Source of the DNA: Oopsacas minuta | Taxonomy: Eukaryota; Animalia; Porifera | NCBI GenBank assembly: GCA_024704765.1 | Contig: JAKMXF010000310.1 | Location: 1,177,246 to 1,205,502 of the forward strand | Direction of reading: 5' to 3' | DNA length: 28,257 bases | Shown: piece by piece, positions 9,877 through 28,257 of the stretch | Layout of the letters: each line of letters starts with the position of its first letter | How positions within the stretch are numbered: the stretch's first letter is position 1 | Translations under genes and position numbers: made by a program | Notes under the pieces: model-generated | The model's input: the letters and a program-made list of their open reading frames with translations, nothing else | Told to the model about the DNA's origin: nothing | Database searches by the model: none

Positions 9877-10856
9877 TTAGTTATATTTCCCTGATATTCC
9901 TTTTATACTTGACTTAAGATTGATCGTTTGGAATGTATTCTTTAATTATATGTAATAATTACATGTGGTTTGCATGCCACTTTCCTAAACCATTTGTTGT
10001 TCAACTCAGTCACCAACCAAGCAGCATTCCCATTATACTAAATTTTGATGTAATTGATACTGGTATAGCTATGAACACATCAATAAATCTATACAATAGA
10101 AATTAAATCTGAAACAACTTATTAGGACCACACTTCTCATGTTTAATCTTAAGCAAATTTTACTACATTTTAGGTGGTTGTTGGTTGTAAAATAAAAGTT
10201 ATGTAAATAATGAAAAATCTCATAATCCAATAAATTTCTCATTCGGATCGTTATATTGTCTTCCATGAATCATTGTTGATAACAATCGCTAGAAATAGGA
10301 TTAGATTGGCCTTATTAATTCCAAATTGAGCGATGTACCTAGTACCTAGCTTACTGCAATTTCCTAAATCAAGAGGAAATTGTCTTGATTGAGTCCGTAC
10401 CGGTCCAGAGCACTACGATATAATGAGATGTTTTGCAGTTACAAACTGATTACACTTGCTCAAGTTGACCTAAAATAGACATTTGAGCCAGGCAACATAA
10501 CACCATATTCTATTAGCTATCCAAGATTTGATACTTGTGATTTGCACTGGCTAAACATTCTCGGGGTATTACAGTGACAAGTGTCAACCTCATACTTGCC
10601 AACCTGAGTGAAGAAAAAAGCGGGACATAAGGGTCTAATTGAGCGTAACATCGTCGGATGTATCATATTTGTATTTGACTGGACTACAAAATAGAGGGAC
10701 AATTACGGGTTTTGGCAAATTTTGACCGGACATTAGCTTCATTGGCAGTCAACACATATCCGGGCGAGAAATCGGGATGTTCCCCAACCAATGGAACTTG
10801 GCAAATATGGTAACGTTTGAACGACTTCATATACAGGATGCAATTTAGTTGCAAGC

Positions 10857-11066
10857 AAAATATTCAGTACAATGTTGCATTATATATTTAGTTTTGATGA
10901 CAGATTTATCTTATATCCAGCTTTCCTTTAAAGTACTAAAATTAATAGCAAACAAATGAGCATGAAAGAGTAGAGAAACAAGCGTGTATAACCGAAATAT
11001 CAACAGTATGAGCATTCCTATGGCAATTGTAATGTATAAATCAATACAATTTGACGATAGTTAATA
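10857..11066 (+). repeat. Dispersed repeat, copy 2; holds the empty (pre-insertion) version of the hAT target site
   Basis: Reads GTATAAATCAATACAATTTGAC continuously, i.e. the reverse complement of both hAT flanks joined with a single ATTTATAC. Confidence 0.88.
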
Positions 11067-11210
11067 CAGTAATCTCCCGCTTAAGTACACAACTTGATCC
11101 GGAGTGGCGAGCGTGTACTTGTCTGGTAGGTGCGTACTTAGCAAAATTGCACAATTTTACGTCCTGTTTTACTTAACAATAGAAATAACAGAACATCAAG
11201 AAACAAATGT
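11067..11210 (+). mobile_element. pogo element 5' end (144 bp), separated from its body by an inversion
   Basis: TA + CAGTAATCTCCCGCTTAAGTACAC; 22/24 identical to the TIR at 11984 but in direct rather than inverted orientation. Confidence 0.85.
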
Positions 11211-11708
11211 ATGCAAACTGTTGTATCTCTTGAACCCGGTAAGACAATTAATTCAACCTGGTATACAGAGAGTTGTTTCCCTCTAGTCATAAAAAGCAAT
11301 AAATTTACAGCGTCCTGGCACAGGATTAAGGGAACTTTTTGCGCCACGATAATGCCAATTCTCATACATCAAAAATGACAAGACAATTCATTGGAGAATC
11401 AGGACTACATATTTTGCTACTCCCCTTATTCTCCAGATCTAGCACTCTGCGACTTCTGGCTCTTTCATAGAATAAAAAATACCTTAGAGGCAGAAATATT
11501 TCATCGAATTCTGATCTTGGGGGGGTCCCTCAAAGATGTGATCGGAGACATCAACGAAAATGAATTTGAAGAAGCTATTCAAGCTTGGTTTAAACGAATG
11601 AACAAGTGTATTCAAGCTAAATGATGCTATTTCGAACAATTATAGTAAAAATAAATACAGATTGATGCTTTTTGATTCTTAGGCAAAAAAGTTATTGAGT
11701 ACCCCTCG
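11211..11708 (+). mobile_element. mariner (DD34D-type) 3' half with right TIR
   Basis: TVVSLEPGKTINSTWYTESCFPLV..RPGTGLRG.FLRHDNANSHTS..SPYSPDLALCDFWLF..WFKRMNKCIQAK; terminus AGGCAAAAAAGTTATTGAGTACCCCTCG followed by TA (11709-11710). Confidence 0.92.
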
Positions 11709-11825
11709 TATTTTTACTAGCGTAAAGAATAATCAACTACAACGGATGGGAGGGCAGAACAAATTTCATTATCATCGTTTTCAACCTGCATGGAACGCAT
11801 ATTTGCAAATGGTTGATACTGAATA

Positions 11826-11862
11826 NNNNNNNNNNNNNNNNNNNNNNNNNNNNNNNNNNNNN
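11826..11862. other. Assembly gap (37 N)
   Basis: N run. Confidence 0.99.
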
Positions 11863-11983
11863 ATTCTACAAATTTGGGGATTTATTCACGATAATGTTAT
11901 CGAATAATGTCATAAAGTTATTATTGGTATGTTCTCGTATAAATATTCAAATATTCGCCATTTACCTACCATATGTAATTGTA

Positions 11984-13882
11984 CAGTAACCTCCCGCTTA
12001 AGTACGCATCCCGCATAAGTACGCAAAAATTTGTTAAAAATTCTGTGTTCAACTTTCTCAAGAATTTATTGAAAAACAAATAAAATGCCCATCAAAAACA
12101 AAATGTTCGCTTTGCTAAATTTACTCACTGTTTAAACATATCATGCATCGTCAGCTGACGCATGTTTTGTGCTCTTTTGCGTTTAGCTTCAGATGCCACT
12201 TGTCGCAGTTTACGCTGAAAATTTTCAAAGGTGTCTTTTAGCTCACCATAAGCATCTCCCGCTTGAGCTTGCACATCGGTGCACAACAACTGGTCCTCAA
12301 CTTCGAGTACTTTACGGTGAAGTTGTTCAAAGCCGTTGAATGTCACTTCATTCTCGATTGGTGCAGAAGCGTTGCTTTGGTCATCACTATCGTCGTCAGA
12401 GTCATCATTTTCTGTATGCATTGTAGCCAACACCTCATTAACATCGTCTAACATCGCCTGCGAATATTCTTCGTTGTTTTCGTCGTCGACATGCATGAAT
12501 TCATTGAGTTCATCTTCTTCAATCACAATATTTAAAGACCTGAATCTTAGCAGAACATCAGACACATCGCGTCGACATCCTCATCATAGCTACCTTGCAA
12601 TGATGTTAAAGAGCCTAACTCAGCCTTGATGAATGAGTTGATTATTGACGTGTCAGATACTAAATCCCATGCACGCTTAACATAAAAAGCGGCATCTAGC
12701 AGATGAGCAGGTTTACTATAAACAACACCAGCAGCTCCTCTAGGGAGCCTTTTCGCTTGCTCTTCTTTTCGGGCTTTCAAGTCCTCATCAAGATCGTAAA
12801 AATCAAGAACGTCCTGGAGATACAAATATTTATACCTCTTTTTCAGTGCTGCGATGATTCCCATATCACATGGTTGTTTCCAGCTCGTACAATTTGGAGG
12901 GAAGAATACTACTCTGACGTTATTCCGTTCAAAAGCTTGAAAATGGCCTGGAGCTTTGTCCATTAACAACAGAACCCGGCGTCCTGTTCTCTTTTTCACT
13001 TCAGGACCAAACACTTCATTAAACCACTTCCAACACGTATTAACGTCCATCCACGCTTTGCCCTGGCTAAAGTACTTTAACGGCCAGTCCCGATTCTTTA
13101 TACAGGCCGGAGATTTTGGTTTCCCGATCAATGTGCATGAAATTTTATGCGTTCCTGTGGCATTCGCACAAACAACCAGCGACAATCGTATTTAGCTTTC
13201 TTTTTCCTCGGTGCTGCTGACATCTTGAAACGGCATAAGCAGAGTATATCTGGGTAGCAGCCGAAAACATAATCCTGTTCATCCATGTTGTAAACACATT
13301 CTGGTTCATACTGCGCGATTATATCATACAAGCTGTTCAACGCAGCTAAAAGTTCCGGGTCCTGTTTGTCTACTTCTGCTCCTTTACCATGAAGTAGAAG
13401 TTTCTGAAGTCCTCAACGTTCTCTAAATCGGCTAAGCCACTGCCATGATGTTTTAAAATCATCCTTCCGAAATCGATAACTGTTCAGCGATTTGCTTTGC
13501 TTTTGCGATGGCCAGAGAGGGTGGAACAGGCAGGTTAGCACGGCGCATGCCATCAATCCAAAGGTATAACATGTCTTCCAGGTCCGAAAACCGACAAACA
13601 GAACCTCGAAACTTTTTGTTTTAGTCTGCTCGGACAACAAAGCAGAACGTTTTCGAATAACTTCTCTGTTCTTCCAAACCTTTCGGATAGCGCCTTTACT
13701 GACTTCGTACTCTCGTGCAAGACTTCGCTTACTTGGAGGAGTTGGCTCACTGAACTTGGCAATGACGTTCGATCTTTGTGATTCATTCAAACGCTTGCCT
13801 TTGCCTTTTCCTGACATTATGCAATCAGAAAAAAAAACTGTACTGTACAATAATGAACCTAAAAAATTTTCTATCGCTAGTG
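11984..13882 (-). mobile_element. pogo element body and 3' TIR
   Basis: TA + CAGTAACCTCCCGCTTAAGTACGC at 11984; transposase on the minus strand; no TIR at the right-hand end, where it abuts mariner sequence. Confidence 0.93.
12125..13817 (-). pseudogene. pogo/Tigger transposase pseudogene (CENP-B-type HTH + DDE_1, DD30D spacing, acidic C-terminal tail)
   Basis: ATG at 13817 (MSGKGKGKRL..SKRSLAREYEVSKGAIRKVWK); LEDMLYLWID, SWQWLSRFRER, VYNMDE, LVVCANATGTHK, KAWMD, LLLMDKAPGH, FFPPNCTSWKQPCDMGII (30 residues between the last two D). Several frameshifts and stops. Confidence 0.93.
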
Positions 13883-14661
13883 ACATGCTGTAATTGCTTA
13901 ACAAACAATACCTATTTTCAAGTGCTGAGTTCTGCGAACCTTTGTTGGGGAACCTTCTCCAATTTCACACCACTGACGGCTCTGCTGCTTTGTTTCTGGA
14001 TCATAGTGATAGATCCATGTTTCATCACCAGTTAATCTCTACTGTTGTCATTGTTGAATTTTGTAATCATTTCATGGCACCATTTCACTCGATTCTGCTT
14101 GTGCTTCTGCTCAGGATGAAGCTGATGTGGGATCCTGCGGGCGGCACAAAGTTTACGTCGCTGAAGGGATTGGTGTAAAACGGTGTGCACTGCTCCAGAT
14201 GAAATGCCAATTTCGTACTGAAACTTCTCATATGTAACATTTGTGTCTGCTATCACCATGTCCTCAATTGACTCAACTACACAGGGGGCCAGGGTGAGGT
14301 TGGTCTTCAAGATGAAAATTCCCATACTTAAATTCTCTGTACCATCTTTTCACTGTTTCCGCTGATACCTTGTTATTTGGAAAGGCTGTACAGAAATTTT
14401 CGTGACATTCTTTTATTGTTTTCAAAAGTTGGAACTGAAAAAGTACTATCGCACGAATATCACGCCTTGACAACTGTATTGAGGATTTGGTAACTAAAGA
14501 ATCCACGGATAATAAAACTAATGCTATCTGAAAAGTATACAAGATAAAGTTACAAGATTTTTAGCGAAGTATATTCATCCCATGTTTATTTGAAACAAGT
14601 AATGGTTACTTATATAAGAGCTCGCAACATAGTCAGGCTCAAAACTTATTGATTGCCCTCG
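13883..14661 (-). mobile_element. mariner 5' half with left TIR
   Basis: TA (14662-14663) + CGAGGGCAATCAATAAGTTTTGAGCCT, ~24/30 match to the TIR at 11708; translation QLSRRDIRAIV..VKRWYREFKYG..EDQPHPG..GISSGAVHTVLH..LCAARRIPHQL..TGDETWIYHYDPETKQQSRQW..PTKVRR..HV, ending at ~13883. Confidence 0.92.
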
Positions 14662-15121
14662 TATAAGAGATAACATAGTATTAACAATTATACATATAGT
14701 TTGTATTTAATGCTTTGATACAACTTGAATATATACTAATTTTGTTATCAATTACTTGAGATATCCATGATTTGTATTACTTGACATGGTCATCAACTGG
14801 GAGTATTATCAAGAATATTGTAATAAACAAAGTATTTATTGTTGATATTGAGTAGAGGATTGTTTAGACCATCATATATAGCTTTGCATTTACATGGATC
14901 AGTGTAAGTAGAACTGTCCGCTAAATAATATCAAGATTTTGACTAATAAAATTCCCAATAAATTCAATTAAATTACTTTATAACCAAATTGAACAGATAC
15001 GGAGTGCGTGATTTCCGGTACCGTTGCGTCACATCCGAAAAATCATAAGTTTTCTTCAATTTTGCTTGAAAGTGAACTTGGCTTTTATAGATTTACATGG
15101 GGTTTTGATGCAACTATATTA

Positions 15122-24365: not shown

Positions 24366-27204
24366 AGTGCAAACTGTAGAATTTCTGACAAATGACTACT
24401 AAATTCTAACAAGTGCATGCACCCCGCGTTCGACACACATCCATGGTCCAAAATACCAATTAAGTTGTATGCAATTACCTAGTTGTCTTTTCACTCTTTT
24501 AGTTGATTCTTTGCTTTTCTCCTCAATGAGTTATATGTTTCCATCTGTCTTAAAGAGATTACCTGTATTCAACATTTTTCCCAGTGCAAGTTCTGCAACA
24601 TTTTTGGGGGATTGCTCTGAACTTACTATTGAAGAACTAGGGATTAGAAAACTAGAGTGTGGAAGCGCTCGTAATTTTTCTAAACAATCTATTTTTCAAG
24701 CAGGTATGGTTCGTTTCTTTATATTTCTCCATTGGAATTTCGAGTACAATTATAGAAGTAAGGCTATAGTATTAGGCTAAATTTCAATGCTGTAATAGGC
24801 TCAATCTATTCAATACAAGTTAGTTGAAGATACTTAGCCTGACGAATTTTTCCTATACTTTATTGCTTCAATTATTTGATGTTTTCTCAATTACCTTCAC
24901 TTTTTCTCACTTTTCAATTTGTTGGTATAATATTGAAGTTTATAGACGTGAATATTGTAATTTTCTCAAACCAAAAATTCATTCTATATGTGCTTAGTTA
25001 TCTCTGAAATGTTCAAACTTCCACCCTGTCCTATACCCTTATGCTAATCAACCCTGATTTTCCACTATACTATTTAAATCTAGGGTTAAGATGCTTTCAA
25101 AGTTTCAAAATATGGAAGTGATAATGGAATTATGTGCTAATACACTTGATGAATTTGAAAATTTCATGGCAAAGTGGAAAGTAAGCCTTGCATAGATTTA
25201 GTCCAAAAGGATTTTGGATAAATATATTATGTTTTAGGTTAAAATCCTATATTTCACCTATGCAAGACCACCATTTCAGAGGAATCCAAATATCATGACT
25301 GGGGGGCTGTTAATTATTTATTATTCTTTTATCGAATTTGGCATATTTTCGGATGAAATGTATATGATAAATGAAACAGTTAATATATAATGAAAAATCG
25401 ATGTGCTATTTATAAACCATGCGTTCAAACCCGTCAGGTTATTCAAATATATTCCTTAATTATATTTTCAAAAGCGTGAACTATGTAATATAAGGATTGG
25501 AAAGTACAATTATTTTCTGGTCCAGAGATAAATATGGAGTGTATTGTAGTTGATTTTCTCATGCTATTAGCAAATAGACTGAAAATATCTTCAAGTCTCA
25601 CAAATATGATGTAGTGAATCACCCATTTCACATCTAGAAGGTTATTTCTGGTCGAAAAGACGTCACGTGATCGCCTAATTGGCTGATATGTTGGGAATGC
25701 TCCAACTTTGAATCACTATGAAACGCGAATACATTACACCATCGATTATCTGAACACCTCCCTCACACACTTTCAATTTGGCGTTCTGATAACTGAAATA
25801 GTGTATTTCCTATTGGATGTTCACAGCTAAGGGATATTTGAGATTGTGAATTTTTAAATTTCGTCCATTTGACTGCGTATTTATCACAATATGGACCTAA
25901 AATGTTCACACCATACGAAAACTAATTATCCAAGTACAATGAAATCATTCTATTGAGATTAAATTGACAAATTTTACAAAGATTTGCTTCCAGCTGTTCG
26001 GATGGCCGAGGAGTCGGATAATTGAGGGTTCGCTCTATTGATCTTGAATTTTATTGTTCAAAAGAAATATACTACCGCGCTTCGCTTGCTAGATCGCTGT
26101 GCTATAGCTGAGTGCTCGAGGTTAGTTTAAGTATTATACAGTGAATTTTTAGTTTTATTTGTCGCTATGCGTCAAAATATTCTCTGCACTTCGCGCATCG
26201 AATTCACAAAATAGCCATAATTGGAATATTTTATTATACATTGTTCATTCTAATTAATTTAATGTTATTCTGTGGTAATAATAGAGTGGCTCCTTGTCTT
26301 TTAGTTAATAATCTTGGCACTTCGTGCCTTTAGCATTATGAAATTCTCAAAAATAATCAAATTTGGGAAACTTTGATATTTTATACAGTTATGATGACGT
26401 GATACTTCTATAATGAGTACGCATTTAATTACTAGATACAAATTTTGACACATTCATCAATATTTATGCATGTATTGATCAATAATTTGTTGTATATTCA
26501 TTCAGGCAAAATGCGCTGTTTCTGTAATATAGAGCTCACATAGGTTTGTTCTAGCGATTAACTTATCTCTAATCCAAATTCACAAGTTACTATTAGGCCT
26601 CTATCGAACTATTATGATTCACCATACGATTGTGTTTAAATGTGATAATGACTTGATCAGTTACAAGTATTATTGTATATCTTCTAAACCGGAGTTATGA
26701 TCATTCTAGTATTCCGTGATGTTATGTTGACTTAGCAGAAATCGAATAATTTTTGTAAATGTGTGCAAACGCTCATGAAACATCTAATATTTCGAAATCT
26801 CACTTTTTGAAAATTGTGCTTTCTCACCACCACCTCCACTATGGTGGCCAATATGTCCGCCCTGACAACTAAATCGTATCGATTATTTTCCCCATATTCT
26901 AGCCAATGTGTACTAAACTTTAGTGTCACATTTAATATCAATCGTGACCTACGTAATATAAGGCCTGACTATTGTGCATAGAATTTCCTACCATGGATTA
27001 CTTAAAGTGCATTTTATAATTCACCCATAATTGTAACACTCAAAATTGACATCATCTGAATTGCTGAAATTCTGTTGTAATCACTTCTCCCATATTGGTA
27101 AATGTATATTATTTGCTAGAGATTATGTTCCCAAACCTTTGGTTATTTAGGATTTTACATTTTTATCTTATTCTGCTATTCTGTTTCATCACTGATTAGC
27201 CTTG

Positions 27205-28257
27205 ATGCCTAACACTTGCTCTGCACCTGGATTCCGGAGTAATTATTGGGGGGAGCCATATACACCAGTATTCAGATTGCCCTCAAACTCTGCACTTAGA
27301 GAAAAATGGCTACACGCTCTGCACAGGCAGGATATTGAAGATCTAAACAACGTATTTGTTTGTTCTAATCACTTTCGTACTAAAAATGTCATCACTGAAA
27401 TGGATATGCCTCAACCTGATGGGTCATTACAAAATTACTCGGCGACCAATTCTACATAAGAACGCTATACCTTGTCTTCTTCCCAGTTGTCCCAAGTATC
27501 TTAGCTCACCATCCCCGAAGCCTGAACGTTTAGATCGTGGGAAGATCGAGAATAAATTGTTCTTTCAAGCCTTAGAACAGAGCCTTGATCTTCATATAGC
27601 TGAGGATAGTAAGTTCGGTGTCAAATCATTAGGAGACCTAAATTGTAAACTCGAAGAATTTGAACTACCTTCTTCTTGGGTTAAATGGTTTTCAGATGAC
27701 ACGTCTATTAACTTGCTAAAGCTGTCAAAAGACAAACATATATATATACCAGCATATGTTTCAATTAATGACTCCTTAACACCTACAATCCTCTCACAAT
27801 ACACAATCTCAGTGATATTCGAGAAATCGATACCATCATCAGCGAGGTTTCTGCATACACTAAGGACCCTTGAAAACTGTATTCGCCAAGCTACTTCTAA
27901 CATTGAAAGTACGATTTCGAAGATAGGAACTTCGAACGATATGCTAGAGAAATATTCAGAATTGTTACCCAGTTAAAATTTCTACTGTGCCAGCTTGAGA
28001 ATACACTAATTCTCAAAAATCGAAGACGGTACAATGTTGTTACAATGGTGCTAGCTCTAAAATCTCATTTTATATCTTCTACCTGCTACAGCTACTTACA
28101 GTTTTTGAGTTGTTTAATATTTCCCCACCCAACAACTCTACGTAGTCTTTATGGGACTATAGGCTTAGAGTGTGAGTTGCAAACATATTTGAAGGCTTCT
28201 ACTGCTAATTTCAATAACCAAGAAAGGAATGTTACATTACATATGGATGAAATACAT
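27205..28257 (+). pseudogene. THAP-domain P-element-type (THAP9-like) transposase, 5' part, running off the window
   Basis: THAP: MPNTCSAPGF(expected C)RSNY..VFRLP..REKWLHAL..VCSNHF..AIPCL; then RRRYNVVTM..YSYL..PHPTTLRSL..RNVTLHMDEIH (first catalytic D region). 1-bp frameshifts at ~27430 and ~27974. Confidence 0.88.

Follow-up and report, generated by a model that had tools for sequence, protein, structure and literature searches.

A segment of about 2.7 kb (as assembled, with an N gap inside it) has probably been flipped in Oopsacas minuta, so that two decayed transposons, a pogo and a mariner, swapped halves; this reading is drawn from alignment of the locus to related copies. The stretch of DNA analysed, in the following called the window, comprises 28,257 nt (assembly GCA_024704765.1, contig JAKMXF010000310.1, positions 1,177,246-1,205,502 of the forward strand; coordinates given below are those of the window). 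Its pieces follow each other in the order pogo 5' piece (plus strand), mariner 3' half (plus strand), spacer with the N gap, pogo body (minus strand) and mariner 5' half (minus strand), exactly as a preceding sequence-only reading had described them. Of the inversion interpretation offered there, one balanced inversion with two reciprocal chimeras as its products is retained, whereas the breakpoints, the motif, the argument of protein continuity and the restored element lengths have been replaced. The event is of a known kind, a transposon-transposon rearrangement at a microhomology, and constitutes a repair scar of an ordinary type.

The assignment of the elements to the pogo and mariner families is borne out by Pfam in the window and in intact relatives alike: the window pogo matches DDE_1 (1.5e-35) and, just below the Pfam cutoff, CENP-B_N (4.5e-4), with HTH_Tnp_Tc5 (1.8e-13) present in its relative L032; the 5' half of the window mariner carries HTH_48 (1.5e-13), the pieces of the 3' half being too short for Pfam scoring, and the intact mariner relatives L020 and L024 contain HTH_48, Transposase_1 and DDE_3. 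The pogo is divided into a 5' piece of 125 bp (11067-11191, plus strand; terminal inverted repeat and start of the 5' UTR), the counterpart of the initial ~125 bp in four intact pogos, and a body of 1941 bp (11984-13924, minus strand), which extends from the 3' terminal repeat at 11984 to the 5' UTR at junction 2 and includes the broken transposase ORF (minus strand, start ATG at 13817). A TA precedes each pogo end (the target-site TA at 11065-11066 and its partner at 11982-11983); the terminal repeats start with CAGT, are identical at 22/24 of their first bases and both lie on the plus strand, i.e. they are direct. The mariner is divided into a 3' half of 517 bp (11192-11708, plus strand; 3' terminal repeat ending in ..cctcg at 11708) and a 5' half of 737 bp (13925-14661, minus strand; 5' terminal repeat ending at 14661); its two ends match over ~27 bp, in line with the ~28 bp of mariner terminal inverted repeats, are flanked by TA at 11709-11710 and 14662-14663, and are likewise direct rather than inverted, as had been proposed for both elements. 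Restoration of the original arrangement yields a pogo of 2066 bp and a mariner of 1254 bp instead of the 2043 and 1277 bp given before; intact pogo copies measure 2034-2076 bp. Altogether five pogo copies were found, each with a broken transposase.

For the placement of the junctions, the locus was aligned with intact elements from this genome, four of them pogos and the others mariners. Intact pogos align with 11065-11194 and then with 13927 down to ~11984; intact mariners align with 14661 down to 13922/13925 and then with 11189-11711. According to these alignments, 11192-11206 is mariner and not pogo sequence, and 13887-13924 belongs to the pogo 5' UTR and not to the mariner. At the break point both families contain the hexamer CAGTAC, the core of which (GTAC) is a palindrome: junction 1 (11189-11194, plus strand) reads cagAac, with the break inside or beside it, and junction 2 (13922-13927) reads gtGctg on the plus strand, that is cagCac in element sense (minus strand). 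The fourth base of the motif thus differs from both family consensuses at either site (A at 11192; C, in element sense, at 13924), and the two sites of the window have CAG + N + AC in common. Since the overlap consists of the same hexamer at both junctions, these are exact reciprocals of each other: the exchange took place with zero bases gained or lost, and the hexamer site is present at both junctions. When break points in the pogo and the mariner were drawn at random in a simulation, a pair shared at least 6 bases with a probability of 0.002 and at least 4 bases with a probability of 0.02.

Both junctions lie in called sequence outside the N gap and both breaks are internal, 125 bp from the pogo end and 737 bp from the mariner 5' end, so that the earlier statements on these points, including the position of the breaks away from the terminal repeats, hold. 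No target-site duplication was detected at the breaks and no long homology at the breakpoints, the pogo and mariner alignments sharing 6 bases only. Neither junction was found elsewhere in the 61-Mb assembly, which contains only five 5' ends of the pogo family, and exact-protein look-ups in other assemblies with four ORFs crossing junction 1 or 2 returned no match. A cryptic signal of the RAG/Transib type was dismissed on inspection, as neither junction represents a head-to-head heptamer joint.

The surroundings of the mariner indicate what the locus looked like before the exchange. The left part of the spacer (11709-11825, minus strand) belongs to an old host repeat; this piece starts with the mariner TA and is inverted relative to the sequence from 14662 onward; the right flank (14662-14987, plus strand) comprises the second mariner TA, after which the host repeat continues. 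In at least eight paralogs of this host repeat (L052-L056, L058-L060), which are older, the reverse complement of 11709-11825 is directly joined to the counterpart of 14662 onward on the same strand, and in paralog L054 just one TA occupies the place of TA-mariner-TA in the window. From the colinear paralogs and the empty site of L054 it follows that the mariner halves derive from one insertion, the left half of which was flipped together with its flank. On the pogo side, the left flank (9877-11064) is a repeat copy of a family with at least 40 copies (~83% identity) whose homology stops at ~11062-11066 beside the pogo insertion, and the right part of the spacer (11863-11981) belongs to a small repeat family (four other copies, ~73%) whose homology stops at the pogo TA; no paralog joining these two families, both of which end at the pogo insertion, was found as an empty site. 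A link of the spacer parts via the host repeat was considered on the basis of a single weak colinear match (L056; 62%, 85 bp, E = 0.13) and was not accepted. A Pfam search of the host-repeat ORFs gave no match.

The separated halves also agree in their affiliation. Both mariner halves have their nearest relatives in the short subfamily L002, L003, L004 and L007 (3-6% substitution divergence), and the pogo 5' piece and body are equidistant from three of the four other copies (L032, L033, L034); an origin of the halves from different subfamilies, which the sequence-only reading had named as speaking against an inversion, was accordingly not observed. The lone discrepancy, the pogo located 39 kb away, is accounted for by a later gene-conversion tract. 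Between 12256 and 13923 (minus strand), the pogo body and this copy, which lies downstream on the other strand (C310:1230135-1232184), differ by 0/1668 substitutions and one single-base indel; outside of the tract, 7/124 sites plus two gap columns (5' piece) and 23/262 sites are different, both pogo ends being 6-9% diverged. The two loci have the pogo sequence alone in common, their flanks being unrelated, and the zero-substitution tract ends at junction 2. We read this tract as the probable outcome of an ectopic gene conversion that was blocked by the breakpoint. Stopping at junction 2, it lets the distant copy record the breakpoint, which an assembly error would not easily do. An assignment of the window as the conversion donor from counts of private changes was rejected: ten private changes of L031 cluster as if produced by one event, and the rates are equal without this cluster.

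With respect to the course of events, TA sites in repeat-rich DNA, separated by a few hundred bases, would have received a pogo (plus strand) and a mariner (minus strand), each of which would have decayed. One break in the pogo 5' UTR and another in the middle of the mariner, each within CAGTAC, may then have released the intervening piece, which would have been rejoined in reverse and loss-free to give junction 1 (11189-11194) and junction 2 (13922-13927). The likeliest route, as we infer, would be end joining of two double-strand breaks aided by the short identity; since the hexamer survives at either junction, staggered cuts or a precise rejoining are more compatible with the sequence than classical microhomology-mediated end joining (MMEJ). 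Afterwards, the inverted pogo body would have taken part in ectopic gene conversion with the pogo 39 kb downstream, up to junction 2.

Among the alternatives, template switching during replication (FoSTeS/MMBIR) fares best, albeit as a distinctly unlikely one: the nascent strand would have moved to the opposite strand at CAGTAC and back, or, in a variant comprising one event only, a broken pogo end would have been re-synthesised with the pogo 39 kb downstream as template, before being joined at the microhomology to the break in the mariner. The microhomology at both junctions with retention of both copies conforms to this scheme, the altered fourth base of the motif at both junctions would suit an error-prone polymerase, and junction 2 is the exact limit of the tract identical to the distant pogo, as if copying had halted there; moreover, MMBIR has been put forward to explain transposon-associated inversions (PMC9675761). 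However, duplications, deletions or insertions are usual at the ends of inversions generated in this manner, whereas the present exchange is exactly balanced, and the tract boundary is explained equally well if the heterology at junction 2 stopped a later conversion.

That the segment was mis-oriented during assembly or scaffolding, or that the copy 39 kb away served to fill in the pogo body, is improbable. Public reads, available as short unitigs from four runs of a single sample (most likely the one that was assembled), were compared with 10500-15000, and none of the unitigs over this interval was seen to span either junction or the N gap (11826-11862), which is located within the segment; 11709-11825 is covered only in run X1 and 11863-11981 only in run X3. 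A unitig of run X3 extends 424 nt leftward of 11863 without landing on 11439-11825, and one of run X1 extends 104 nt rightward of 11825, with 27 nt fitting the pogo end at 11982-12008; the true length of the gap is thus probably greater than the 37 bp given in the assembly. The unitig depths were too inconsistent between runs for copy counting. A unitig of run X2 hints that position 13924 may occur with the consensus base as well. As the gap lies inside the inverted segment, the link between the contigs rests on the scaffold together with the reciprocity argument, and, the gap being unbridged by unitigs, the inverted segment is of uncertain length. The gap, the lack of a bridging unitig, the coverage of the two gap sides in different runs and the 1,668 body bases that are free of substitutions relative to another copy would speak for an artefact. 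Against it, the junctions are situated inside contigs at a 6-bp identity far below the word size of any assembler; they are exact reciprocals in two different contigs, and turning either contig does not restore the elements. In two runs, unitigs terminate at 13923 and 13927, which is what a branching of the graph at junction 2 would produce, and assemblers do not collapse copies that are 6% apart. The case shows how paralogous empty sites, and a gene-conversion tract that halts at the breakpoint, can support a rearrangement independently of reads.

Still less probable is a cut by a Tc1/pogo-type transposase at two pseudo-ends of a segment CAGTAC...GTACTG: a 3-base stagger after CAG would leave four compatible overhangs, and the piece could religate either way without loss. 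The termini CAGTA..TACTG do resemble a Tc1/pogo end (5 bases match the real pogo end CAGTAA), the rejoining was balanced and loss-free, and the flanking CAG is intact at both junctions, the changed base being the first one after CAG on the ends of the flipped piece. However, the similarity to the terminal repeat ceases after 5 bases, with the consequence that a transposase binding site is missing, TA is absent outside the pseudo-ends, and all five pogo copies found are broken; besides, the idea is post hoc, and the junction sequences of the mariner inversion at C325 are different. The practically negligible alternative is the 4-bp microhomology of the sequence-only reading, ATGT at 11207-11210 and ACAT at 13883-13886: these tetramers do occur at the coordinates named, but both match by chance within uninterrupted element sequence (mariner from 11189, pogo to 13927), at least 4 shared bases being expected in 2% of random pairs, so that the junctions had been misplaced by ~15 and ~38 bp relative to the intact-copy alignments and the true motif is CAGTAC. 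The transition from '..HV' to 'ATVVSLE', by which the protein had been read through the junction, fails as an argument for continuity. By-eye junction calls can miss by tens of bases.

No sign of function was recognised in the rearranged elements, both transposase genes being broken, and neither a new gene nor a regulatory effect became apparent at the inversion. On the minus strand, the mariner 5' half does precede the pogo ORF, as had been pointed out, and the two form no fused reading frame. As a neutral scar within dead transposons, the single event is of little weight; its use is that of a base-resolved, clean case of a balanced inversion at a 6-bp identity. Independent small inversions were encountered in two other copies (C325 and C338) among the 25 of 44 mariner copies surveyed, and inversions of 0.8-2.7 kb split 3/26 family copies (window, C325, C338). 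These numbers hint that small inversions may be unusually common in the O. minuta genome. If the mariner inversions are real and not specific to the assembly, small, near-loss-free inversions have been fixed far more often than in well-studied genomes. That the event in the window might be an instance of a lineage-wide habit, due either to a bias in break repair or to cleavage of short motifs with a palindrome in them (here CAGTAC, which resembles a Tc1/pogo end) by a nuclease or transposase, the piece then religating in flipped orientation, is a speculative and rather unlikely extension. A hot spot in the middle of the mariner was not accepted: the break of C325 is 35 bp away from the site of the window and that of C338 is at position 1127, and three events are too few. 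A literature search found no report of the locus or of frequent small inversions in any comparable genome.

Several known systems share features with this inversion. Alternative transposition (reversed-ends Ac/Ds, P, hobo) generates inversions beside DNA transposons, as found here; its breakpoints, however, coincide with element ends and target-site duplications are made, whereas the present breaks are internal (125 and 737 bp) and lack a duplication. Galileo of Drosophila buzzatii produces inversions by ectopic recombination, which needs two homologous copies in inverted orientation: the two cases agree in that each breakpoint is occupied by a transposon and that the resulting chimeras have ends that do not match, but the pogo and the mariner have just 6 bases in common. 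The 1,668-bp tract bounded by 6-9% divergence and unshared flanks corresponds to ectopic gene conversion between dispersed repeats, from which it deviates in that one tract end is a rearrangement breakpoint. In MMEJ, annealing at the microhomology removes one copy and the sequence between. The short identity exactly at the joints (within the range of 2-20 bp) and the base changes beside the joint are in agreement with the MMEJ or polymerase theta-mediated pathway, yet both reciprocal joints keep the hexamer with no base missing, which points either to cuts at the same motif position or to a route other than MMEJ; these pathways have been reviewed (PMC12426944). Several features are shared with the non-homologous class of transposable element-mediated rearrangements (TEMR-NHE), which occur between unrelated transposons at short microhomology and include inversions of ~2.5 kb (median of the transposon-associated inversions 2,454 bp), with a microhomology of less than 5 bp in nearly 96% and small insertions in 35% of the events (PMC9675761). 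The breakpoints in two copies without long homology, the short microhomology and a size in the same range recur in the inversion in the window, which in turn is distinguished by its 6-bp family motif, by the lack of any loss or insertion, and by involving invertebrate DNA transposons instead of Alu or LINE-1.

In the window, which corresponds to G000:C310:1177246-1205502, the 5' end of the pogo lies on the plus strand at 11067-11191, preceded by a TA dinucleotide (11065-11066), and runs into the 3' half of the mariner (11192-11708, plus strand), which is bordered by a second TA (11709-11710); this TA begins 117 bp of a host repeat (11709-11825), followed by a run of 37 N (11826-11862), 119 bp of a second repeat (11863-11981) and a TA at 11982-11983. 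The remainder of the pogo, extending from the 3' end as far as the 5' UTR, occupies the minus strand (11984-13924) and is joined to the 5' half of the mariner (13925-14661, minus strand), with a further TA at 14662-14663. The family names given to the two elements from sequence alone stand, supported by Pfam domain matches: DDE_1 (1.5e-35) and, weakly, CENP-B_N in the pogo body and HTH_48 (1.5e-13) in the mariner 5' half; the longer open frames of relatives added HTH_Tnp_Tc5, Transposase_1 and DDE_3. Both elements of the window are dead, because their reading frames are fragmented (the pogo frame into at least four pieces, the mariner frame into several). No fused mariner-pogo frame was present in the window: the stop of the mariner frame lies at 14032 and the ATG of the pogo at 13817. 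The stretch at 9877-11066 belongs to a repeat family of at least 40 copies (about 83% identity), other members of which are longer by about 340 bases at the point corresponding to window 10394; another repeat, at 27102-28127, shares 90.5% identity with L057 (G000:C304:91428-92483) over 1,056 bp.

The orientation of the mariner halves can be judged from the surrounding host DNA, since an old repeat family includes both 11709-11825 and the sequence from 14662 onward. At least eight other members of this family (L052 to L056 and L058 to L060) carry the reverse complement of 11709-11825 and, 0-70 bp further along that strand, the homolog of 14662 onward; in L054 both parts meet at just one TA, in place of the TA, mariner and TA of the window. 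The colinear paralogs and this lone TA show that a single insertion at a TA gave rise to both mariner halves, and that the 3' half and its flank now lie in the wrong orientation; on the mariner side, the inverted arrangement proposed by the sequence-only reading is thus borne out. Both halves have their nearest relatives in common, at similar substitution distances (3-6%), so that the mariner halves do not come from different subfamilies. On the pogo side, no paralog spanning the insertion site was found, because both adjoining repeat families end at the TA of the pogo; its 5' piece and body are equidistant (roughly 5-10%) from the pogo copies L032, L033 and L034. Some copies of the host repeat around the mariner (window 11709-11825; L058, L059, L060) have a long open frame of up to 294 aa (L060) that includes ..RMG..N.FHYH....AWNAYL.., a motif readable in the window too; there was no Pfam match for this frame.

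Besides the window's own pogo, the assembly contains just four copies that have a 5' end (C310:1230135, C332, C99, C338), along with about 44 mariner copies that include the break region. Alignment of the intact pogos covers 11065-11194 and then runs unbroken from 13927 down to the 3' end; intact mariners from the short subfamily to which the window's element belongs (L002, L003, L004, L007) align from 14661 down to 13922/13925 and then unbroken to 11189-11711. At the break point, the intact pogo sequence is ..ATAACAGTACTTGAAAA.. and the intact mariner sequence ..GAACTCAGTACATCAAG..; the window reads ATAACAG-A-ACATCAAG at junction 1 and, in element sense, GAACTCAG-C-ACTTGAAAA at junction 2. 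These alignments place the breaks within a common hexamer, CAGTAC, at 11189-11194 and 13922-13927, and the exchange is exactly reciprocal, with zero bases lost or added. The ATGT at 11207 and the ACAT at 13883, previously taken for the junctions, sit within continuous mariner and continuous pogo sequence, respectively, and are a coincidence. With the segment turned back, the pogo measures 2066 bp (2034-2076 bp in intact copies) and the mariner 1254 bp. According to a simulation on these two elements, at least six bases are shared by a random pair of break points with a probability of 0.002, and at least three with a probability of 0.06. Among the copies compared, base 4 of the hexamer is T in all pogos and in 6 of 7 mariners; the window instead has A at junction 1 (11192) and, in element sense, C at junction 2 (13924). 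The two altered bases, which could be rejoining errors or older private changes, occupy the termini of the inverted segment, the adjoining CAG being unchanged at both junctions.

Two internal breaks were rejoined reciprocally in opposite orientation, with a common hexamer at the breaks. The repair would have been end joining of two double-strand breaks, the short identity guiding it or coinciding with it. Classical microhomology annealing keeps just one copy of the motif; a better fit would be two cuts at an identical motif position that were rejoined precisely, or staggered cuts within the palindromic GTAC core. Replicative template switching might also have produced the arrangement. Cutting by a Tc1/pogo-type enzyme at CAGTA pseudo-ends is a speculative reading of low probability that draws on a resemblance of five bases. 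Transposase action at the element ends is ruled out, in agreement with the sequence-only reading, because the breaks fall 125 bp and 737 bp in from those ends and show no new duplication; homologous recombination between inverted repeats is ruled out because the two elements have only six bases in common.

A full-length, broken pogo, L031, lies 39 kb downstream on the opposite strand (G000:C310:1230134-1232183; L031 1135-3184), and nothing except the pogo is common to the two loci. Over 1,668 aligned bases (12256-13923), the window's pogo body shows no substitution and one 1-base indel against L031; 7 of 124 aligned sites differ in the 5' piece (plus 2 gap columns) and 23 of 262 in the 3' end (11994-12255), the ends of L031 being 6-9% diverged from those of the window's pogo. 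These alignments show a pattern like that of ectopic gene conversion, with neither direction of transfer favoured. The tract has one internal end; at the opposite end it stops a single base short of junction 2, the point at which homology is lost. The simplest order would be inversion followed by conversion, the heterology having set the limit of the heteroduplex; one complex repair event, in which re-synthesis from the distant copy preceded joining to the mariner break, is also conceivable. In either case, L031, 39 kb off, bears the imprint of junction 2, which argues that this junction is biological.

The read evidence consisted of four public runs (X1 to X4) of one sample, kept as short unitigs; among the pieces listed, none crosses junction 1, junction 2 or the gap. 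Unitigs end at 13923 (X4) and 13927 (X2), which would fit a branching of the graph at junction 2; the X2 unitig has one mismatched letter, perhaps a sign that the consensus base is present at 13924 as well. A 712-nt unitig of X3 covers 11863-12150 and runs 424 nt further left without landing on 11439-11825, and a 302-nt unitig of X1 covers 11628-11825 and runs 104 nt further right, 27 of which fit the pogo end at 11982-12008. The unitigs of two runs therefore enter the N gap from opposite sides without meeting, one of them reaching a 27-nt pogo-type terminal repeat, and to judge from these overhangs the gap probably exceeds 37 bp; a further repeat or a polymorphic insertion may lie within it, and either a larger gap or heterozygosity for an insertion beside the TA of the pogo is possible. 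Coverage of 11709-11825 came from X1 only, at about half single-copy depth, and that of 11863-11981 from X3 only. The flipped segment (11192-13924) spans 2,733 bp in assembly coordinates, a minimum or estimate given the uncertain gap length. The inversion itself is deduced independently of the gap, because each junction lies within its own contig and the two are reciprocal.

Paired short probes flanking the break site, applied to all matching mariner copies, revealed one further copy with its halves on the same strand, on C325 (L061 1908-3203; G000:C325:11407-12702). Element positions of about 32-795 are inverted in place in this copy, so that the 5' terminal repeat leads into the first 765 bp in reverse complement, and these into a normal 3' part; one joint has lost about 3 bases, and four (AATA) are shared at the other. 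A third split mariner, on C338 (L067 908-2668; G000:C338:48907-50667), shows an inversion of about 1.26 kb with one break at element position 1127, positions 1126-1307 on the plus strand lying 1.1 kb from positions 603-1127 on the minus strand. The survey for further split mariners covered 25 other copies out of the approximately 44 in the assembly. Two copies are interrupted by insertions (G000:C316:351976-354040 and L068 3047-3948), with about 1.95 kb between the two break-flanking probes in one and about 0.9 kb near the 3' end in one. Immediately 3' of the break site (window 11195-11215), the short subfamily of the window's mariner (L002, L003, L004, L007) is without 24 bp that most copies have; this deletion, the window break and the C325 break all fall inside about 50 bp of the mariner. 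If such small inversions are validated, their frequency in this genome would be the finding of interest.

Rearrangements between transposon copies that lack long homology, with short microhomology at the joint, are well described, among them inversions of about this length (PMC9675761), and the window inversion is like those events in involving a transposon pair, a short microhomology and a similar size. Ectopic gene conversion between dispersed repeats is ordinary, and the window case is a fresh example of a kind already known.
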